Source: Geosiphon pyriformis uo1 (Eukaryota; Fungi; Glomeromycota). From it: a stretch of 44,102 nt of DNA. Made by a program: the position numbers and the translations under genes. Location of the stretch: the NCBI GenBank assembly GCA_016748015.1, contig JAAOMT010000755.1, forward strand, positions 1 to 44,102. The letters are read 5' to 3'. Position 1 is the first letter of the stretch. Every line of letters begins with the position of its first letter. This document shows positions 14,702 through 44,102 of the stretch, piece by piece. The notes below the pieces were generated by a model. It was not told where the DNA came from. It saw only the letters and a list, made by a program, of their open reading frames with translations, and did not search any database.

Positions 14702-15970
14702 ATGTCTCAAGATGTCAAAATTCAAATGCGAATCGAATTCTTAAACTTTGAATTTGAAAATTCTGAAAATTTGAACCAATCATTAGAATTAAAGAATTAT
14801 GATCAATTTTCATCTCTTCAAAAGGTTGTAGTTGTTGGTGATGTCACATCATTAAAGGATATATTGAGGAATCGAAATAATGCTCCTTTTGATTTGGCCT
14901 CTTTTCGAGTTTTCACAGAGGATAGAATGTGTTCAGAATTGATTGATTTTTGGTGAGTGAAACTCTAAAATTTTAAAAGATTTCGAAATTAATCTCTTTT
15001 TCTATTTTCCCCTCTATAATATATAGGTGCTCGGTTGAAGCGTTTAGAACTATCATTGACCTGGAAACACATGAAAAACAAGCCAAATATATTTATGAAA
15101 CTTATATTTCTCAGCAAGCGCCAAAAGAAATTAACATTAGCGAACAAGTTAGAAGAACTATCCACCAAAAACTTTTCGATATCACAGAAACTCTGGTAAT
15201 TTTTATTAAATTCCTACCCATAAAAAATTTATATCAAGTCAACTTTTAAATAATCCCAATTTTCGATTCAAAAGGACACCAGCATTTTTGATGAATCACA
15301 ACAAGAAACAGAAACCCTCCTTCTCGGTAATATTTACCCAAAATTCATTAATCATGTCCATTTACGAAGAGAGCTTCTACTTTCACGAAACATAGCAATG
15401 TGGTGTTTTAACCCACCCACAATTCGAGGTTTTTTCACATTTCCAAATCCAATAAATAATGTCGAATCAAGAATTCACAACATTTGTGTAATCTTTCTCG
15501 TATCTATTTCTGTCATTCTGGCAAGATTTTACAATTTCCCATTTTTGTTTTTTTACATTTTCTATGGTTACACTGCAAGGGTTTTCACAGGACCACGATT
15601 AGATCCACAAGCCTTTTTGGTTTTATTTGTTTTTCGTCCCTTATTAGAAGATAAAATACCCCTTTTCAAATCACATTACGAATCCTCAATTCCAAAACAT
15701 TTTGCACAAATCTGTGGAATGCTTTTCTCTGGTCTAGGAACCCTATTTTGGTTTTTAAACATGAGAATCATTTCTTTGATTTTTTGGATTTTGCTTTTTA
15801 TCGCGGCTTTTTTGGCTGGTATTTTTAATTATTGTATTGCTTGTGAAATCATTTATTACGGTGCGAAGGCAGGATGGTTGCCAAAATCTTGGTATGATGA
15901 TTGTACCATGACTTATATTACTGGTGAAAATCATCGAAAATCGTTGTTCCCTAAAAATTTATCCCAATAG
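14702..15970 (+). CDS. RGS-domain protein fused to a C-terminal DUF4395-like multi-pass membrane domain (about 371 aa; exons 14702-14952, 15027-15195, 15275-15970)
   Basis: RGS motifs: SLKDIL...FRVFTEDRMCSELIDFW|CSVEAFR...AKYIYETYISQQAPKEINI...FDESQQETETLLLGNIYPKF. DUF4395-like motifs: FTFPNPINNVESR, YGYTARVFTGPRLDP, PKHFAQICGMLFS, NYCIACEI. Exon lengths 251+169+696=1116 nt, in frame, with GT-AG introns. Confidence 0.9.
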
Positions 15971-16281
15971 GAGATTGAGAAGCCAAACCAATATTTGATA
16001 TTTGCTTTTTAATAAAAATTTTATATGTCTTATTTTAATTTATCCAATTATTCTCAAATTAAATATTAAAAAATAATAATAACAATTTATTTTAATTATT
16101 CTCAATTTAAAAAAATATATTTTTATTAATTAGTTTAAAATTGATTCTTAAATAAAAAACATTATCTGATTAAATATTTCAATTGGCTTAAAATTGTCGA
16201 TCTCCTCTGATTCGCCAATATGAAACTACTAATCTATAAAATAACTTGCCAAAAAGATCCTTTCTTTTCTTGTGCTTGAAT

Positions 16282-19414: not shown

Positions 19415-20049
19415 GAGTAGAAAAATAATCATTTTTTCGATATATAAAGTATGATTGTTTACTTGTGGGAATTGACAGGAAACTATTAGTTCTTGAAAGT
19501 CCAATGCCTTTTTATAAATTAGCAATTCATTAATTGACCCTTCTTGTTTGCTTGTTTAGGGATTTAAGTCTGCCTCTGATAGAATCCACCCTCTCTCCCT
19601 CACTTTCTCGAAACAGTAGTTTGCACAAGAACCAACAAACCAATGCTCAGGATTAGACAGTTTGATATTCGCTTATAAAGTACGGGGAAGCAGGACTTCG
19701 GAATTTTCGTCGCTTCAGTGGGAATTCTTGATGAATGTTTTGTTTATATTAAAATATATCCTCAAACTAGGATCTTAGAAACGAATTAGAAATGATGGTT
19801 TTTATTTAAATAGTGAATTGTAAATTAAAAAATCGCTTCTGAAATACCGTGTGATCGATAATCATGATTATGATAGTAGATCATGAATGTATTGTGGCTA
19901 ATGATGGCTGTTTATCTTATTGGCTAACAATCGTGTGAAACTTGATTTCAAGGTAATTTGATTATAAAATTGCGTTTATGCTTTTTGTTCTTTTTTGTCC
20001 ATTTTCAATGAATAATCCTTAAATTTGTAAGAAATATAATCAATATACA

Positions 20050-21640
20050 AGAAATCTTAAGTAAAAATAAATTTAACAATTTAATTAGACAAATTGCATA
20101 GGAATTTTATAGAAATCATACAAAGTATAGAAATTAACTGAAAGTTTTATTATTTAATCAAATTTAAGATTTTCAAGAATTTGGTTTTAATTATATAATT
20201 TGTTGATGAATACAACAATATAAAAAAATATTATTTAATTATTAAAATAATAAAAATGAAATGTTAAAAACCTCAAAATTATGTTTTATAACAAGTTTTA
20301 TTTATGTGAAATTTTTATTATTATGAATTATTATTAAATTTAATTATTATATTTAATATTATATTTATATAATTTGCATTAATAATAATATTACAAATAA
20401 AAATTAAATTAGAAATTTTTTTATTATTTTTTGACTTTTCAATATAATTGCTAGAAGTTTTGAGTAATAAATTAATAATTGACAAAAAATAAATTAAATA
20501 AATAAAGAAAGTATATTAAATAATATAAATTATTTAATAAAAATAAAATTATTAATTTTAATAATAAAATAAAATAAATAAATAAATAATGTTTGTAATT
20601 TTAAATAAAATAACTAAAAAAATTAAACTTTAAATTAATAAAATATAAAAAAAATTAATTAAATTAAATAAATAAATAAATAAGATTTAATAAGTAATTA
20701 ATAATTTAATATTTTTTATAAAATTAATAAAAAATTTATTGATTAAGTTGATAGCTAAATTAAATCATAAAAACACTAAAATTTTTATTTTATTTTAAAG
20801 ATATGAAAATAAATTATAAAATACAATATATATAAATAAAAAATAAATAAATCATTTTTAAAGAAATAAAATATGTTAATATTTAAGTTTACTTAAATTA
20901 TTATTTAAAAAGTAACAAAATTTATTAAAAAACTAACTTTTATTACAACAAATTTAATCAAATTAACCATATTTTATAATTTAAATTTAACTAAATTAAA
21001 TTTAAATTTATATATTTTAAACATATATATAATATTAAATAAGTACATTTATTTATAAAAAATTTTAATACAATAACAAATTAAAAAAAAAGCTTTTAAA
21101 AACCAAAAACAGCAATTTTTTTAACTTATTTAAATATTAAGTTTTTTAATTACAGTTTTAGTAATTTTTTGCATATTTTATTTAATATACTATTATATAA
21201 ATCAAATTTATTACTTTTTAATTCTAATTTATATATATGTAGTTATTTAATTATCTGTACAAATTTTATATTTTTTTGATATAAATATTAAAATTAATAT
21301 TATAATAATAATTTCTATTAAAATCAATAATATAGTTTTTAAACATAATCATTATATTTATTATTAATAAATCTTTTTATTTATTTTTAATTTTTATTTA
21401 TTATATGTATTATATTATAATTTATGTCTATAAATTTATTAAATAAAAAATAAAATTATATACTTATATTAAATTTTTAATAAATTTAATATTAAACTAA
21501 CAATAATATAATAATAAATTATATAAATTTTAAATTAAATTTTAAATTTTAAAAACTTAATTTAATAATAAAAGTAAACATAAATTAAAAAAATTAAAAT
21601 ATAATTACCAAAAATAAATATATTATAATTTATAAATTTT
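20050..21640. other. Extremely AT-rich tract, probably hypermutated repeat DNA
   Basis: Almost no G or C, and a composition matching the decodable Gypsy fossil at 24.3-25.7 kb. I could not decode a motif here. Confidence 0.5.
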
Positions 21641-21644
21641 AAAA

Positions 21645-23927
21645 AATAACTCTTTGTCTCTCAATTTTATAACCATGATCAGAGCAAAGAGTAAAAAAGC
21701 TGCACTTGATATTTTTCCTGAGATATCTAATAAAATTTCAATCAGGAAAGCTCTCTCTGTTGTAAAAGCAACTAGGCAAAACGTTTTAAAAGTTTTTTCT
21801 TTACCCAATAATCATAAAAAGCTGTTTTTGGTAGTTATTAAAGCATCTTCCTCATTTTTGGCTGGTTTTTCACCAGTTAAGATTCTCTTAAAGAGACATA
21901 TTTGAGTTAGTTCCAGTATTGTCTCTACCCCAACTAAGAGCCTAAAAGCTTTTAATAATAGATCTGTAAACAAGTTAGTCTTCCCTTCTCTTGCTTTAAC
22001 ACCTAGTACTGCTAGCACCATTTCTTTAAAAAAATGGTCAAAAAGACCAAAAGCTCAGAAAAATAGGGACAGTTGCTTGTTTTTGCTATTGTTACACCAA
22101 AACCCTTTGTGGTTTCCAATGAAATCTTAGATAAGATCTCTATAGTATTATCCAGCACATTATTTAAGATAGGCTAAGATCAACTACTGGCTGTGTTGCC
22201 AAATATGGTGTTTTTTGACAAATCATTACTGGTTTTAAAAGCAAAACATTCATCTTCTATTAGGTCATCTGTTCTTAGAAACTGGGCTAATTAAATGAAA
22301 ACTGAATCATCTTCTTCTCTCATTTCTGGTGCTGTTGCTGGTGGTACTTGGGAAACTATTGTTAGTTGTCAAAGATTTGCTGGATGGGTGGTCTCTACTT
22401 TAGTGCCTAATGCTACTTTTAAGATCAAACTGGCTTATGTTAAGACTGTTTTTCAGTTTGTACATGGTTTCTTGGGTGCTAAGTTAGTGTTAAAAGACAA
22501 TGTAAAGCTGTTTTGTGTGGAGTTTGCTTTTCAAGTGTCTTTGGAAGTTGTATTTTTGGTTGAGCTTACAAGCTCTGTACATTTGACTACTCTCAAAATT
22601 GCCAAGTCTTTGGTGATTTCTGAGTCTGGCTCTTTTTCTGCTGCTGTTGTACTGTGTAATATGCCTTTGGGTGTGTTTGCTGCTGACATTAAGACAGTTC
22701 TCAGTGTTTTTGGTATGGTTACTTGTATTGTGCTGAAGCCTGCTGGCATTTGGCAGTATGTTGTAATCTATTTTGAGAATTTGATTGCCACCACATCTGC
22801 TCTCAATCACTGATCTGTTTTGGTGGACAAAGATAGTGTTCGGATTTTTCTCCTTGTAAATCAACAAAAAACAATTGTGTCTTGTAATAAGTTTAAGACC
22901 AAGTTGGTCAATCTTTTTTCTGGCTGCACTGTCTTTGAAATCAGTGATATGGTTTCTCAAGTTGGTAATCAGACTTGTTTTATTCCTTGGTCTCCTGATT
23001 CTGGTTATCATTTTCACTTTGCTCTGATTACATTTGGCTCTTAAGCTGATTTGGATCTTGCTGTTATTAAAACTAGTACACTAAGAAAGTACTATATTTG
23101 GTGAGAAACTCCTGGTTGTCAGTGTTGTTTTTGGTGTCAAGAGATAAGCCACTTGGTTGTGGACTATAAGGTTGCTTCACCTCCTTCTTCTAAGACTTTC
23201 AAGATGTTTAAACTATGTTTTATTAGTTTTTTGTCTTATGTAAAAACATTTGTTTCCCCTGTTCTTTCTGAGTTTTCTCTTTTAGTGGCTTTTGCTCCTC
23301 CTGTAGCTGTTAATAATTCTTTGGTGTCTTCTCAACTGACATCTCTGAAATTTGATTTGGCCAAGCTTTCTGTTTTGGTTGAATCTATTGTTAAGCCTAT
23401 TAGCTTTATGGTCAAAATTTTTGAATAATTTGTTAATAGTAATCTGATTTCTAGTGCTGCTCTTGGCCTTAAGGTTAATGAAGTTTTGGTTCACATGAGT
23501 TCTTTTAGCAAAGCTGTTAGTAAGTTGAAGTGGAAAGTAGTTGCTCTGAAATTTGAGTGTGGCTTTGAGAATGTTGACATGTCAGGTTTTCATGTGAGTT
23601 TGTCATCTTTTAATGATAATATGTTTTCTAATTTGATGTTTTTTTGAGAACATGAATCTACTGCTATAAAGATTAATGCTTTTAAAACAGCTGAATGGCT
23701 AGTTAAGATTGGTTAATAATAATGCTACATTATTTGAGATTGTTCAAAGAATGTCTTTTTTGAGTAAGTTTTCTTTTAGTGCATCAATGTAGTATAGCCT
23801 GAACTGGCTTAAGTAGCTGGTTATATGTAGTAAGCATATGAACCATATTTAGTCCTAGATCACTTAGTTTGGTCCTAATTTCTAGATAATGATTGGGCCA
23901 TACTCATTAAATTCATAATAAAAAAAA
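21645..23927 (+). mobile_element. Non-LTR (LINE-type) ORF1-only element: degenerate ORF1 at 21675-23792 (RRM-like region, CCHC knuckle, coiled coil), short 3' UTR and poly(A)
   Basis: About 700 largely collinear codons broken by TGA/TAA stops. RRM-like segments (VVLCNMPLGVFAADIKTVLSVFGMV; KLVNLFSGCT...FALITF) and a decayed knuckle CFWCQEISHLVVDY (from CxxCxxxGHxxxxC). Ends ...ctcattaaattcataatAAAAAAAA. Almost no CpG. Confidence 0.8.
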
Positions 23928-24299
23928 TAATAATTTATAAAATTTTTATATTAAAAAAAATATAAAAAATATAAAATTTAAGTTTTTAATAATAATATAT
24001 TTATAATTTAAATGACTGATTATATATTAAAAATACATAATTTATATTTATAATATTATAAATTAAAATAATATATTAATAATAACAAAATAATACAAAT
24101 ATTGTATAATAAAAAAATAATTAAAGAGAAATTTAACTTAAAAAAAGTAAATAAATTACTAAATATTTAATATATAATATAAATTTATAAATATTTCAAT
24201 TATTATTTAAAAAATAACAAAAATCTAAAAATTTAGAAATAATTTATACTATTAACAAAAATAACATAATTGTTATATGTTTTATATTAGTATTTTTTA

Positions 24300-25700
24300 G
24301 TAAATATTTTATTAATTTATTTGTTTAAAAAAATAATAAAAAAAAAGTTATATATTTCAAGTTTTTTTATTAAAAAGTAATTTTTTAAAGCATTAATATT
24401 AATATATATATAAATAATTAAAACAGTTATTAAATTAAGTAATACTTAAACTTTTATCTATTTTATATATATTGGTTTTTATTAAATATTAGTATAATAA
24501 ATTTAATAATATTAATTCCAATTTTTTGCTTATATCTTTTAAAATTTTTAAATATTCTGTTAATAAATTAATATATATATTATAAATTACAATTTTTTAA
24601 ATAAAAATTTTATTGTTTTTACAAATATTTTTTTTGCTTTTAATTTGTAATTTAATAAATACTAAATAATTTTTTAAATTTATTATTGTGATTAATTTAA
24701 AACAAAATACTTATAATTAATTTGTAAAAATTGGTTAGATGTTTTTTATTATTTAATTTTAAATTAAAATAAAATATCTGTGTTTTAATTACTTGTTTTT
24801 TTTAATATTTGATCTTATAATTATATTTATTAATTAAAAAATTCAGCAAATAATTTATTTGTGTTTTAATATTTTTTGTTATATAGTTAAACCAAAGCTT
24901 AATAATTGATATATATTATAAAATAGATACTTAAAAAATATTAATTTTAATAGTTTGTTATTTAAATTATTATTATTCTTGTTTAAAAATAATGTAATTC
25001 TGTTTAATTAAAAATATTATTTTGTTTGTATAGCAATAATATGCTTTTTGTTATTATTTAATTAAAATAGAATAATACTTAATTAATATTTTAAAATATT
25101 AATATAAAAAATAAAAGATTTTTTTAATTAAATTACTTTAAATAGATTTAAAAATTAATTTTTTTTAGAAATATCAAACATTTTTTATTAAATAGTATTT
25201 CAATAATAATTATGTCTTTCTTAAAAAGCTAATTTAAAGAATAGACAATTTTGACAAAGTTTTTTACAAATTTTTAATAAAAAAATGCTAAGTTTTATAA
25301 TTTTTAATGAAAGCAGTTTAATTTTTCTTAATAGAATTAATTTGTATTTGTTAGAATTCAATAGTTAAATTAATAATAGAAAAGAACATAACACTTTTAA
25401 ATTTATTTAATATGTTTTTAATATTTAGAAAAAAATAAAATTTTAATAAATATTGGTATTTAATTTATAATAATTAACATAAAATTATAAGATTTTTTTT
25501 AATATTATTATAATTGGAAATACTTATTCATTTTTAATTTTTTGTATAAGACCAAATTTTTTTTTTGTTTTATTTATTTTTTAATAGACTTGTTATTTTG
25601 CTAATTGAATTAATAAAACTTTTTATAAAATATTCGAATTGATTTGATTTTAATTACATGTTAAATTAAATTGTCTTTTTAGAATGTTTTTTTTAAATAA
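24300..25700 (-). mobile_element. Ty3/Gypsy LTR-retrotransposon pol fossil (RT-RNase H-integrase), heavily mutated by C>T/G>A; limits approximate
   Basis: Minus-strand reading gives LAFFY*KFVKNFVKIVYSLN*LFKKDI (about 25290-25210; RT-end LASFYRKFVKNFAKIAxPL), KSFIFYINILKY*LSIILF* (RNase H KPFILYTDAS..GLGAVL), QNYIIFKQE, YFIIYINY*ALV*LY (F.V.TDH.AL.WL), and KIGINIIKF...KNQYI (integrase IGIDI.GP...GN.YI, about 24525-24460). Domain order RT-RH-IN is Gypsy-type. Confidence 0.8.
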
Positions 25701-26579
25701 CTTTATAATTGCATATTTAAAAGTTTTTAATGTTTTTTTTTTAATTTTAATGGGCTTTTTTAACTATAAAAGATTTAGTTTTGGCACTTTTTTTTAAATA
25801 ATTTTTGCACAGTTTTAATTTTTTATTAAATAGCAGACTAATTGGTTTCTAATTTTTATAATAAATTAGACATGATTTGTATTTGTTGTTAAAAGAATAC
25901 AAAATTTGGTTGTACTAATATCTTACATAAAACCATGATATTAATAATTTTATTTAGTTTTCTCTTTAGATTGCTAATAAAACATTCTATTAAGCATGTT
26001 ACAACATGGTTAGTAGTTTTCTATTAATAATTAATTTTTTGCTGTTTATTTGTATATTATTTAAGAGCTTTTTTTGTTGTAAAAGCAATTTTTATTATTA
26101 TTATTATTATTTAAATTGTTAGAATTTTTAAAATTATTATTATTGTTGTTGTTGTTTTAAAGTTATTGTTGTAGTTTGATCATTTTAGAAAATACTGGTC
26201 AATATTAACACTTAACTATAATTGGTTCTATGCGATAAAAAATTTACATAATTTGTAATTCGTTTTTGATATTTTCATATTAGTTTTAATACAAATTTTA
26301 TTTATTTGCACAGATATAGCTTTTGTAATTTCTAGTTTTTTCTTCTTATTACATATTTATTGGTTATTAGTCTTGTCAAAGGTTTATTTATCTTTCTTTT
26401 AAAAAATACTGCTTTAAGTTATAGTACTATTATTTTTAGCAAATATTTGATTCAAATAATAGTCAAACATTTTTTTAAAGCTATTGGAAGAAGAAATAAT
26501 GAATTTCTAAGTTGTGCAATAATTAACATAAATAAAGATAAAAAAAATTGAAATTATAAAAGCTATTTCTGTTTGTATC

Positions 26580-41960: not shown

Positions 41961-42775
41961 TGATATTGTTAAAATTATTTGTAAAAATTTTATTTTAAAA
42001 TAGTTCTTAACAGATTATGTAATTAATTATTTTTATTATTTAGAATTGAACTGTATTATTAGAATAAAAAAAATTGTTTCCATAAATAAATTTTAAATAA
42101 GCTAATTTAATAATAAATTTAACAATAAAAAATTTAAATAAGCAATTATAATAAGACTATTTTATTGGATTTAATATTTTAAACTTAAAAATCAAATGTA
42201 AATATGATAAAAAAATAGGTTAATTTATTATTTAAATATTGATTCAATTTAAAAAAAAAAAATTGAAAATTTAATATCTTGTTTTAAAACATAAAACATA
42301 ATATAAAAATTTATTTAAAATCTTTTTAATACATAAATGTTTAACAATTAAATTAATAATTAAGCTACCAAATAAATTAATAAATTTAAATATCAATATG
42401 TAACAAAAAAAATATTTAATATAACTAAATAAAATTAAAATTTAAGATAATTATATTATGTTTTTTTTTTTAAAAAATATTTTAAAAATTTAAAAATACT
42501 TTATTGTTTATAAATTGTAAAATCATTTTTACAATTATTTTTGATGTTATAAAAATATTTTGTAAAATAATCAATTTTTTTACTTTTAAGACAATTTTTA
42601 TAAATACAAATCAAGAAATAATGAATAATAAATTGATTTAAAAGTAAATTGTTATTTAATTTAAAAATTATAAATTTTTTTATATTTTAAATACTTTTCT
42701 ACAGCTTTGAAGAATTTTATTAAAATAATTTGGTAAAAATTTTATTTTAAAAATAAAATAATTAATATATATTTG

Positions 42776-42824
<49 letters not shown>
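42776..42824. repeat. (AAT)n microsatellite
   Basis: About 16 consecutive AAT units in an AT-rich tract. Confidence 0.95.
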
Positions 42825-42825
<1 letters not shown>

Positions 42826-44102
42826 TATCATAAAAATTAAATATAAGAATATTTACTAAAAAAGCAAATAATTAAATTAATGACTAAGTAAAACATTTGA
42901 ATAATAAAATTAATTTAATAACCAAATTAGTGACAAGATGTGAATAATTCAATAATTAATTTAATTCAATAATGAATTTTAAAAATTAAAAAATTTATAT
43001 ATAATTAAGATAATATAAATATTTAAACTTAATACCATAATATAATTTTATTTATTATAATTTATTTATTTAGGCCAATTAATAATTTTTTTTAAAACGT
43101 TAATACATAAATAATTACTTTAAAGAACAACAGAGAAATTATTATGTAAAATATTAAACATACACAAAAATAGCGAAAGACAAAACATAACAATAAATTT
43201 ATTTAAATACAAAATTAAAAAACAAAGTCATGTTACAACAAACAAATAAAAAATTTTGATCCAAAATAAAATCAACTTCTAAGGTTGTGAACTAACTTGA
43301 GTTTTTTTTTCACCTCAAATTATGGATGAGTATTAATTATAATCCGCGCATATTTACCAATCAACATATTAACAGAAAATAAACTTCAAAATTCTGAACC
43401 ACTTCATGTAAGCTTTTCAAAGATTTTTTAGATAATGTATGCATTGGTTGATATTTGAATATGTTAGATAAAACCTACTTGTAAAATTTAATCTTGCTAT
43501 GAGATGACGTATTTCTGAAATATAGTCAATTTAAAATCTAGTATAAAATTTATTTATCAAAACTACTTTATAATTCGCATGGACTAAAAACTACTTTTTT
43601 TGAGAAAATAATATTTTCAAGTAATATAACTATTATCTATCAATTCAACGAGATTGAAAAGATTCTTAAACAGCGTATATCTCTAAAGTTATAATTCTGT
43701 CATAGGGTTAGAGTTTATGAATATGAAAATTAACCTATTTAAGTAGATTGTATCAATAACCCATTCAAAAATGTAAACACAAGTTTTTATATAAGGATTT
43801 AAAACTTATAAAATAGCAATTACTAATCAAGTAAGAAAAGATGTTAACGGAGTGGGGCTTTAATATTTATTCATATTATAAGAATTTTCATATTAATTTC
43901 CAACTAATAATAAAATCTTGATATTGTATGCTGTATATCACCAGCTATTGGGAATCTTTTTCTTAATTTATAGCTTTTAGATCCTTGATTACTTGTGAAT
44001 TGCTTAAAAAAATACCTAATGAGATTCTAACAACAACAATAAAGTAACATGCTTTGCTGATATTTTCCTTATTTTTATGTGAAATATCTGCTACTAAAAA
44101 TG

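Follow-up and report, generated by a model that had tools for sequence, protein, structure and literature searches.

Structure of the gene at 14702-15970

The window analysed here, which is the whole stretch of 44,102 nucleotides read from contig JAAOMT010000755.1 of the glomeromycotan fungus Geosiphon pyriformis uo1 (GenBank assembly GCA_016748015.1), carries a three-exon gene on the + strand at positions 14702-15970. The coding sequence totals 1116 nt, that is, 371 codons and a stop codon, and joins a regulator of G-protein signalling (RGS) box to a C-terminal membrane domain of the DUF4395 family. The fusion of the two domains, which had originally been read from the DNA alone, is confirmed by the present analysis, and the gene belongs to an old and widespread family of eukaryotic RGS-DUF4395 proteins. 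The features of the gene are as follows, TM being used here for transmembrane helices and AF2 for AlphaFold2:

14702..14952, + strand: exon 1, with the start codon, a disordered N-terminus of about 45 aa, and the opening helices of the RGS box as far as E-L-I-D-F, followed by two bases of a Trp codon; residues 1-83 of the deposited protein KAG9285122.1, 100% identical
14953..15026, + strand: intron 1, 74 nt, GT..AG, phase 2; junction backed by collinearity with homologues and by the deposited protein
15027..15195, + strand: exon 2, with the middle helices of the RGS box, among them that with the Asn of K-E-I-N-I; alignable with RGS2 and RGS16
15196..15274, + strand: intron 2, 79 nt, GT..AG, phase 0; backed by collinear homologues and the deposited protein
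15275..15970, + strand: exon 3, one open frame that encodes the last RGS helix, the linker helix, DUF4395, the C-terminal tail, and the stop codon at 15968-15970
14891..15352, + strand: RGS box, residues 64-166, with parts in all three exons (Pfam E 4.8e-18)
15290..15397, + strand: linker helix, residues 146-181, predicted to continue from RGS helix 9 to the membrane domain
15452..15856, + strand: DUF4395 domain, residues 200-334 (Pfam, AF2 model, hydropathy)
15458-15532, + strand: TM1 (AF2 model and hydropathy)
15542-15589, + strand: TM2 (AF2 model and hydropathy)
15605-15655, + strand: interfacial or re-entrant helix (AF2 model and hydropathy)
15686-15754, + strand: TM3 (AF2 model and hydropathy)
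15764-15823, + strand: TM4 (AF2 model and hydropathy)
15833..15844, + strand: first CxxC, C327-I-A-C330, where TM4 ends on the cytosolic side
15893..15904, + strand: degenerate second CxxC, Y347-D-D-C350, with Tyr in place of the first Cys of the pair

The first part of exon 3 encodes the helix that closes the RGS box, aligned with helix 9 of both RGS2 and RGS16, and the frame continues with no stop codon into the membrane domain. As this helix and DUF4395 occupy one exon and one frame, the fusion is independent of any splice call. The original prediction had placed the RGS box over three exons, with its last helix in the exon and frame of the membrane domain, and both the open frame of exon 3 and the alignment of helix 9 bear this out, while the motifs that it quoted (FPNPIN..ESR, ARVFTGP.L.P, PKHFAQ..G, and C-I-A-C) are all found in the sequence.

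Residues 1-364 of GenBank KAG9285122.1 match exons 1 and 3 with 100% identity, and have the same two junctions as the present model. Support for the splicing is of a comparative kind only, and consists of the collinearity with homologues and an RGS profile match that is unbroken over both junctions. The start motif, M-S-Q, is common to the Geosiphon gene and its orthologue in Ambispora. The domain scans, folds, and profiles of the whole protein are based on residues 1-364 of KAG9285122.1, with the last seven residues before the stop codon being left out.

The RGS box

The protein matches the Pfam RGS family (PF00615) at 66.1 bits (E 4.8e-18; profile positions 11-110 of 117), and exon 2 by itself matches this family at 28.6 bits (E 2e-6), the curated cut-offs being 23.9 bits for RGS and 24.5 bits for DUF4395 (PF14340). 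Solved R4-type RGS proteins were matched by sequence at E 1e-13, and the Foldseek comparison of the model of the RGS box returned a probability of 1.00 to RGS2, RGS16, and RGS4, with TM-scores (by target) of 0.87-0.88 and a root-mean-square deviation (rmsd) of 1.9-2.0 Å over 113-118 columns for RGS16 and RGS4. The Geosiphon box is 27-32% identical to these three R4 proteins, has the same nine-helix fold, and retains the Asn of the K-E-(I/V)-N motif.

This residue, Asn120 of K-E-I-N-I, aligns with the K-E-I-N of RGS2, and is Asn in 53 of the 54 family members. We take its position to be that of Asn128 of RGS4, a residue of the loop between helices 5 and 6 that contacts the switch regions of G-alpha and is critical for the activity of the GTPase-activating protein (GAP). 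The Glu aligned with Glu87 of RGS4 is also conserved in most of the family (47/54), and the retention of both residues argues for selection on the binding of G-alpha. At two other positions, the Geosiphon box has the Cys and the Asn of RGS2, which are presumably C106 and N184, the residues that help to set the selectivity for Gq. The R4 proteins reach the membrane by amphipathic helices or palmitate, whereas the Geosiphon protein is membrane-integral.

The scan of the Geosiphon assembly (128 Mb in 792 contigs) recovered only one DUF4395 locus, as against at least eight loci for RGS and at least three for G-alpha, the latter on contigs C656, C554, and C654.

The DUF4395 membrane domain

The assignment of the C-terminal half to DUF4395, which had been proposed from its motifs, is upheld by a Pfam match of 67.8-69.3 bits (E 1.5e-18; residues 200-334, profile positions 1-126 of 130), so that the whole protein yields the two domains expected of it. 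Exon 3 alone also matches this family, at E 5.1e-19, over residues 60-194 of the exon product, and the only DUF4395 match in the genome scan is that at 15452-15856 (70.7 bits).

The AF2 model of residues 1-364, built from an alignment of 86 rows, has a predicted local distance difference test (pLDDT) of 87.4 and a predicted TM-score (pTM) of 0.79. In this model, residues 1-41 are disordered, the RGS bundle comes next, and residues 146-181 form one unbroken helix that links RGS helix 9 with the membrane domain. The pattern of this juxtamembrane helix, L-x-x-x-A-x-W, is conserved in the RGS-fused members and in other eukaryotic members of the family, and is absent in the bacteria. The membrane domain modelled alone (pLDDT 94.1) comprises TM1, a short TM2, an interfacial or re-entrant helix, TM3, TM4, and two short helices in the tail, with a beta-bridge between the segments that precede TM1 and TM3, which therefore lie on the same side of the membrane.

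Among the 106 sequences aligned, the loops between TM1 and TM2 and between TM3 and TM4 average 2.2 and 3.4 residues, respectively, with approximately 0.1 Lys plus Arg, and the remaining three segments carry 1.5-3.5 of these residues each. Together with the beta-bridge, this distribution of charge indicates a topology with both termini inside (N-in/C-in), which leaves almost nothing outside the cell. All of the conserved motifs and both Cys pairs are thus predicted to lie on the cytosolic face, beside the RGS box, which is itself predicted to be cytosolic, as had been expected.

The comparison of structures found no similarity of the DUF4395 domain to any enzyme or transporter fold, and the search of the ESM Atlas, leaving out the DUF4395 clusters, gave no usable match. 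A thiol oxidoreductase of the VKOR/DsbB type, with four TM helices and an extracytoplasmic CxxC, was considered, and no support was found for this fold. The YgaP-like TM domain (PF11127) gave matches below the threshold in five of 20 bacterial DUF4395 proteins (best E 0.094), and the hhalign comparison of the Escherichia coli YgaP, as a single sequence, with DUF4395 gave no backing to this resemblance, with a probability of 0.1%.

The CxxC that had been noted near the last TM helix is present as C327-I-A-C330 and is nearly invariant in the family, its two columns being Cys in 104 and 105 of the 106 aligned sequences. A second CxxC follows approximately 17 residues downstream, with Cys in 51 and 50 of the 52 short sequences of the bacterial type, and in 24 and 23 of the 34 eukaryotic sequences fused to RGS. 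Geosiphon has Y-D-D-C at this point, and is the sole sequence with Tyr at the third Cys; its membership of the Pfam family is unaffected, given that the second CxxC lies just outside the Pfam model. Four cysteines on the cytosolic side would be less usual for a disulfide relay than for a site that binds metal. The only match of the DUF4395 profile among the PDB sequences is a FYVE zinc finger, at E 0.053.

Distribution of the architecture

The family profile was scored against 1.84 billion cluster representatives, which gave 6331 matches at E <= 0.001, and the best 150 of these were re-scored with separate RGS and DUF4395 profiles. Sixty of the best 150 representatives contain RGS followed by DUF4395 in one collinear match, always in that order. 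At least 60 clusters at 50% identity, from the Opisthokonta and the SAR group, thus have this architecture, and the order and spacing of the domains are fixed across the family. The named members are:

Glomeromycota: Ambispora gerdemannii, Geosiphon
Chytridiomycota: Quaeritorhiza, Gaertneriomyces (two species), Powellomyces
Rozellida: Rozella allomycis
Ichthyosporea: Abeoforma whisleri
Ochrophyta: Ectocarpus, Cladosiphon, Tribonema (two species), Phaeothamnion, Chrysoparadoxa
Chlorarachniophyta: Amorphochlora, Lotharella

The Ambispora orthologue, which has the same architecture, is 59% identical to the Geosiphon protein. Two of the members, from Tribonema gayanum (Trinity) and Lotharella globosa (MMETSP), are open reading frames of transcriptomes, which indicates that RGS and DUF4395 are transcribed together at least in Tribonema gayanum and Lotharella. 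The search in fungi and protists therefore recovers a fusion that is both real and conserved.

The members of this family are named "RGS domain-containing protein" in UniRef, and a cluster in the ESM Atlas is named "DUF4395/Regulator of G protein signaling". De Mendoza et al. (2014, PMC3971589) report only that most lineages have RGS joined to one or more TM domains. No description of RGS-DUF4395 was found by the full-text search, leaving aside Anantharaman et al. (2011) and the supplements of de Mendoza et al. (2014), and DUF4395 is mentioned in only two papers, each time in passing and for bacteria. The architecture has thus been catalogued, through automatic labels, but not described. The original claim of novelty stands insofar as no paper describing the fusion was found, and falls insofar as the Geosiphon protein is not a one-off, being one of a family of at least 60 clusters that the databases already label.

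DUF4395 is also found at the C-terminus of other long eukaryotic proteins (P0054, P0056, P0057, P0073, P0074, P0098, and others, P0056 being a protein of 989 aa from Paulinella micropora), which have the same juxtamembrane helix and N-terminal regions of 300-550 residues that lack any Pfam family. The Pfam scan of the long N-terminal regions of 34 other DUF4395 proteins returned no match. These proteins look like a second set of architectures.

Relationship with the bacterial DUF4395 proteins

The stand-alone DUF4395 proteins of bacteria are approximately 165-195 aa long, and those in the sample come mostly from the Actinomycetota, but also from Thermus, Corynebacterium, and Lactococcus. They are approximately 26-32% identical to the membrane domain of Geosiphon, with which they share F-P-x-P-x-N...R, the Arg of which precedes TM1, the G-P after TM2, the P-K-R-F-A-Q before TM3, and the CxxC, as well as the second CxxC that is degenerate in Geosiphon. 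Predicted models of the Geosiphon domain and an actinobacterial cluster superpose with TM-scores of 0.77/0.79 and an rmsd of 2.2 Å over 162 residues. The combination of this level of identity with nearly invariant motifs points to more constraint than would be needed in a passive anchor. The bacterial proteins differ from that of Geosiphon in lacking both the RGS box and the juxtamembrane helix, and in having S-P-L-G-Q where the eukaryotes have D-P-Q-A-F. The sampled bacterial proteins also have an invariant Glu in TM4 (L-E-A), where Geosiphon and Quaeritorhiza have Ala or Gly.

The unrooted maximum-likelihood tree of 106 domains separates the 49 bacterial sequences from all of the eukaryotic ones by a long branch (length 1.31), with support of 100 in the Shimodaira-Hasegawa-like approximate likelihood-ratio test (SH-aLRT). 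The eukaryotic side includes an ochrophyte clade (96) and a weak grouping of the fungal sequences, except Quaeritorhiza, together with some unnamed sequences. This arrangement fits a single old eukaryotic subfamily, and not a transfer that reached Geosiphon recently. As the bacteria sampled are only the most similar ones and the tree is unrooted, it does not identify a donor.

Three bacterial DUF4395 loci inspected singly have no common theme among their neighbours. The commonest of the 120 open reading frames that flank DUF4395 in 62 actinobacterial loci encode CBS-citrate synthase (10-11) and zinc alcohol dehydrogenase (9), and rhodanese and metallo-beta-lactamase occur four times each. The neighbouring citrate synthases are 74-89% identical among themselves, which suggests that their position is probably due to synteny among related species.

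Comparison with other membrane RGS proteins

The original prediction held that the protein is neither a Rax1 nor one of the RGS proteins with seven TM helices (7TM-RGS), and both points stand. Rax1 consists of an RGS domain and three TM motifs (PMC3248559). Geosiphon has a separate Rax1 orthologue (P0283) of 442 aa on another contig (C392, 157500-163500), with RGS and three TM helices, and the relatives of this protein in Basidiobolus, Tieghemiomyces, Haplosporangium, and Pseudozyma are named Rax1 or "Bud site selection protein, Revert to axial protein 1". Three TM helices characterise the Rax1 family, which lacks both a conserved Cys and a DUF4395 match, and the hhalign comparison of its TM profile with that of DUF4395 returned a probability of 0.4% over 25 columns. 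The separate orthologue, the unrelated TM region, and the single DUF4395 match in the genome together rule out the identification of the gene at 14702-15970 as the Rax1 orthologue. The protein resembles Rax1, RgsB, and MoRgs3, which are likewise fungal, in having an N-terminal RGS domain followed by C-terminal TM helices, but these proteins have three TM helices and no Cys motifs, in contrast with the four TM helices and the re-entrant helix found here, and the TM regions are not homologous. A second Geosiphon gene with RGS followed by TM segments is found on a further contig (C549).

Members of the Rax1 family occur in Rhizophagus, Funneliformis, Glomus, Diversispora, and Paraglomus, as well as in the Dikarya. 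The family searches recovered no named RGS-DUF4395 member among the Dikarya or the crown Glomeromycotina, and the only members in the Glomeromycota are Ambispora and Geosiphon, both of the Archaeosporales, a distribution that suggests a possible loss of the architecture in the crown Glomeromycotina.

The 7TM-RGS proteins, which include the plant AtRGS1, the fungal class VI proteins GprK and MoRgs7/8, and the 7TM-RGS of Naegleria, are similar to the Geosiphon protein in being integral to the membrane, with a cytosolic RGS box that holds a GAP beside G-alpha, and both would represent an off-switch resident in the membrane. In the 7TM-RGS proteins, however, a domain of seven TM helices that resembles a G-protein-coupled receptor (GPCR) is N-terminal to the RGS box and offers extracellular loops, whereas the Geosiphon protein has zero TM helices before the RGS box and four after it, in a DUF4395 bundle that is homologous to bacterial proteins and has outer loops of only 2-3 residues.

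The deposited gene model and the neighbouring gene

The deposited model of the locus, KAG9285122.1 (G9A89_008469, 690 aa), bypasses the stop codon at 15968-15970 by way of an intron from approximately 15946 to 16257, and runs into the downstream gene, with residues 365-690 matching DUF1295 (Pfam E 2.4e-48). DUF1295 is absent from all four of the RGS-DUF4395 homologues that were scanned whole, two of which are approximately 700 aa long, and the homologues P0001-P0004 stop between a few and about 50 residues past the Cys motifs. The 371-codon model is therefore preferred: judged by sequence comparison, KAG9285122.1 is demonstrably a merger of two genes, and needs to be read as such in the annotation of Geosiphon.

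The downstream neighbour, from 16282 to approximately 17749 on the + strand, is a gene of about seven exons for a DUF1295 membrane protein, similar to steroid reductases and ICMT, with its own ATG. Its product begins with M-G-E-T-L-S, a possible start for N-myristoylation. Elsewhere in the window, the intervals 20001-22000, 24001-26000, and 42001-44000 are extremely AT-rich, with a GC content of 11-16%, compared with 23-36% in the other parts.

Functional interpretation

The gene probably encodes a membrane-tethered GAP for G-alpha, that is, an integral-membrane RGS protein of 371 aa in which an R4-like box is mounted on a DUF4395 domain of four TM helices. In this arrangement, a cytosolic RGS box would pass through one continuous helix into the C-terminal four-TM bundle, with both termini inside. 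The RGS box would switch off one or more of the Geosiphon G-alpha subunits at the membrane that hosts the protein, DUF4395 would supply permanent residence in this membrane, and the conserved site on its cytosolic face, composed of basic residues, Pro/Gly turns, and Cys pairs, would lie beside the RGS box and probably bind a cofactor, a metal, or an anionic lipid. That the box acts as a GAP, which G-alpha it meets, and whether the Cys site has a role are matters of inference.

A number of points weigh against this interpretation. Position 80, which corresponds to Asn88 of RGS4, is Leu in Geosiphon, and is Asn in just 23 of the 54 family members. No splice joints were found in three sequencing runs, which come from one sample, with none on record as RNA; the same runs yielded the source contig and one contig of 208 nt inside exon 3. 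The predicted topology is drawn from a structural model and charge counts, and the comparison of structures found no solved structure that resembles the DUF4395 membrane domain. The bacterial neighbourhoods are also inconsistent, and give no function for DUF4395.

A second explanation, in which DUF4395 senses the redox state, a metal, or a small ligand through CxxC and gates the GAP allosterically through the rigid linker helix, giving a GPCR-independent input, appears unlikely, and such sensing is purely conjectural. The near invariance of the first CxxC, with a second pair in most members, the weak match of the Cys-rich tail to the FYVE zinc finger, the coupling of the domains by a continuous helix with their relative orientation confidently predicted (pTM 0.79), the fixed order and spacing of the domains, and a conservation of the membrane domain far above the needs of anchoring would all be expected of a sensor. 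Outer loops of 2-3 residues, by contrast, provide no extracellular ligand site, so that a signal could arise only in the cytosol or inside the bilayer, and the receptor-like role first suggested for the membrane domain is unlikely on these grounds, given that the conserved motifs and the Cys pairs are also predicted to be cytosolic. Geosiphon, moreover, lacks one of the four Cys, and approximately 30% of the RGS-fused members lack the second pair; the incomplete site weighs on a sensing role in Geosiphon itself. Neither a VKOR-like nor a DsbB-like fold was found, and the bacterial operons provide no link to redox or metal genes past the few rhodanese and metallo-beta-lactamase neighbours among the 120 flanking frames. 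A gating or sensing role for DUF4395 that responds to cytosolic or intramembrane signals only is, on this evidence, doubtful.

It is less probable still that DUF4395 has an enzymatic or transport activity of its own at the cytosolic leaflet, with the RGS box serving mainly to recruit activated G-alpha as a regulator. RGS-homology (RH) domains do act as G-alpha-binding inputs in the RhoGEFs and GRKs, such as the RGS-RhoGEFs and GRK2, and the polar, Pro/Gly, and Cys cluster, which is shared with the stand-alone bacterial proteins, resembles an active or binding site. The different long N-termini borne by other eukaryotic DUF4395 proteins, such as the 989-aa protein of Paulinella, also suggest that the membrane module is the constant working part. 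The RGS box is nevertheless of the R4 GAP type, and not of the RH type, with the catalytic-site Asn in 53 of 54 members, and DUF4395 has no similarity to any enzyme or transporter fold and no activity on record.

An artefact of the gene model or a contamination, in which two genes have been joined or a bacterial DUF4395 gene lies on a fungal contig, is highly improbable. That the deposited protein joins this gene to its neighbour shows that annotation at the locus is fallible, but the final RGS helix lies in the same exon and frame as DUF4395, with no intervening stop codon, spliceosomal introns interrupt the gene, its AT-rich composition is like that of its surroundings, the Ambispora orthologue and the other members of the family have the same conserved architecture, and the eukaryotic domains stand apart from the bacterial ones over a long and fully supported branch, all of which is in agreement with the original argument that the fusion is no artefact. 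A protein of the Rax1 type, finally, is scarcely credible, given that the same gross layout, of an N-terminal RGS domain followed by C-terminal TM helices, is offset by the separate orthologue with three TM helices, the hhalign probability of 0.4%, and the one DUF4395 match in the Geosiphon genome.

Implications

Membrane-bound RGS proteins are the means by which plants and many protists control self-activating G-alpha subunits. The membrane-tethered GAP proposed here has a genuine, conserved, and undescribed membrane-RGS architecture, distinct from both 7TM-RGS and Rax1, the two kinds discussed in the papers considered here, and it takes its place beside them as a third. With members in early-diverging fungi, an ichthyosporean, chlorarachniophytes, and both brown and yellow-green algae, it is well conserved and apparently unstudied, probably because it is missing from every standard model organism.

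A more ambitious proposal, which for the present is only a tentative one, is that these proteins form a third, ancient class of membrane-integral RGS protein, present in the Opisthokonta and SAR and lost in the Dikarya, animals, and plants, in which a four-TM module of prokaryote type, bearing a Cys/metal site on its cytosolic side, would sense redox, metal, or lipid at the inner leaflet and gate the GAP by way of the rigid helix. If true, this would add a GPCR-independent input to heterotrimeric G-protein signalling, and would open a first way into the function of the large DUF4395 family of bacteria. The fusion in Geosiphon and its relatives ties this large bacterial domain to a defined eukaryotic pathway, which makes DUF4395 approachable by bacterial genetics and biochemistry together with the read-outs of G-protein signalling.

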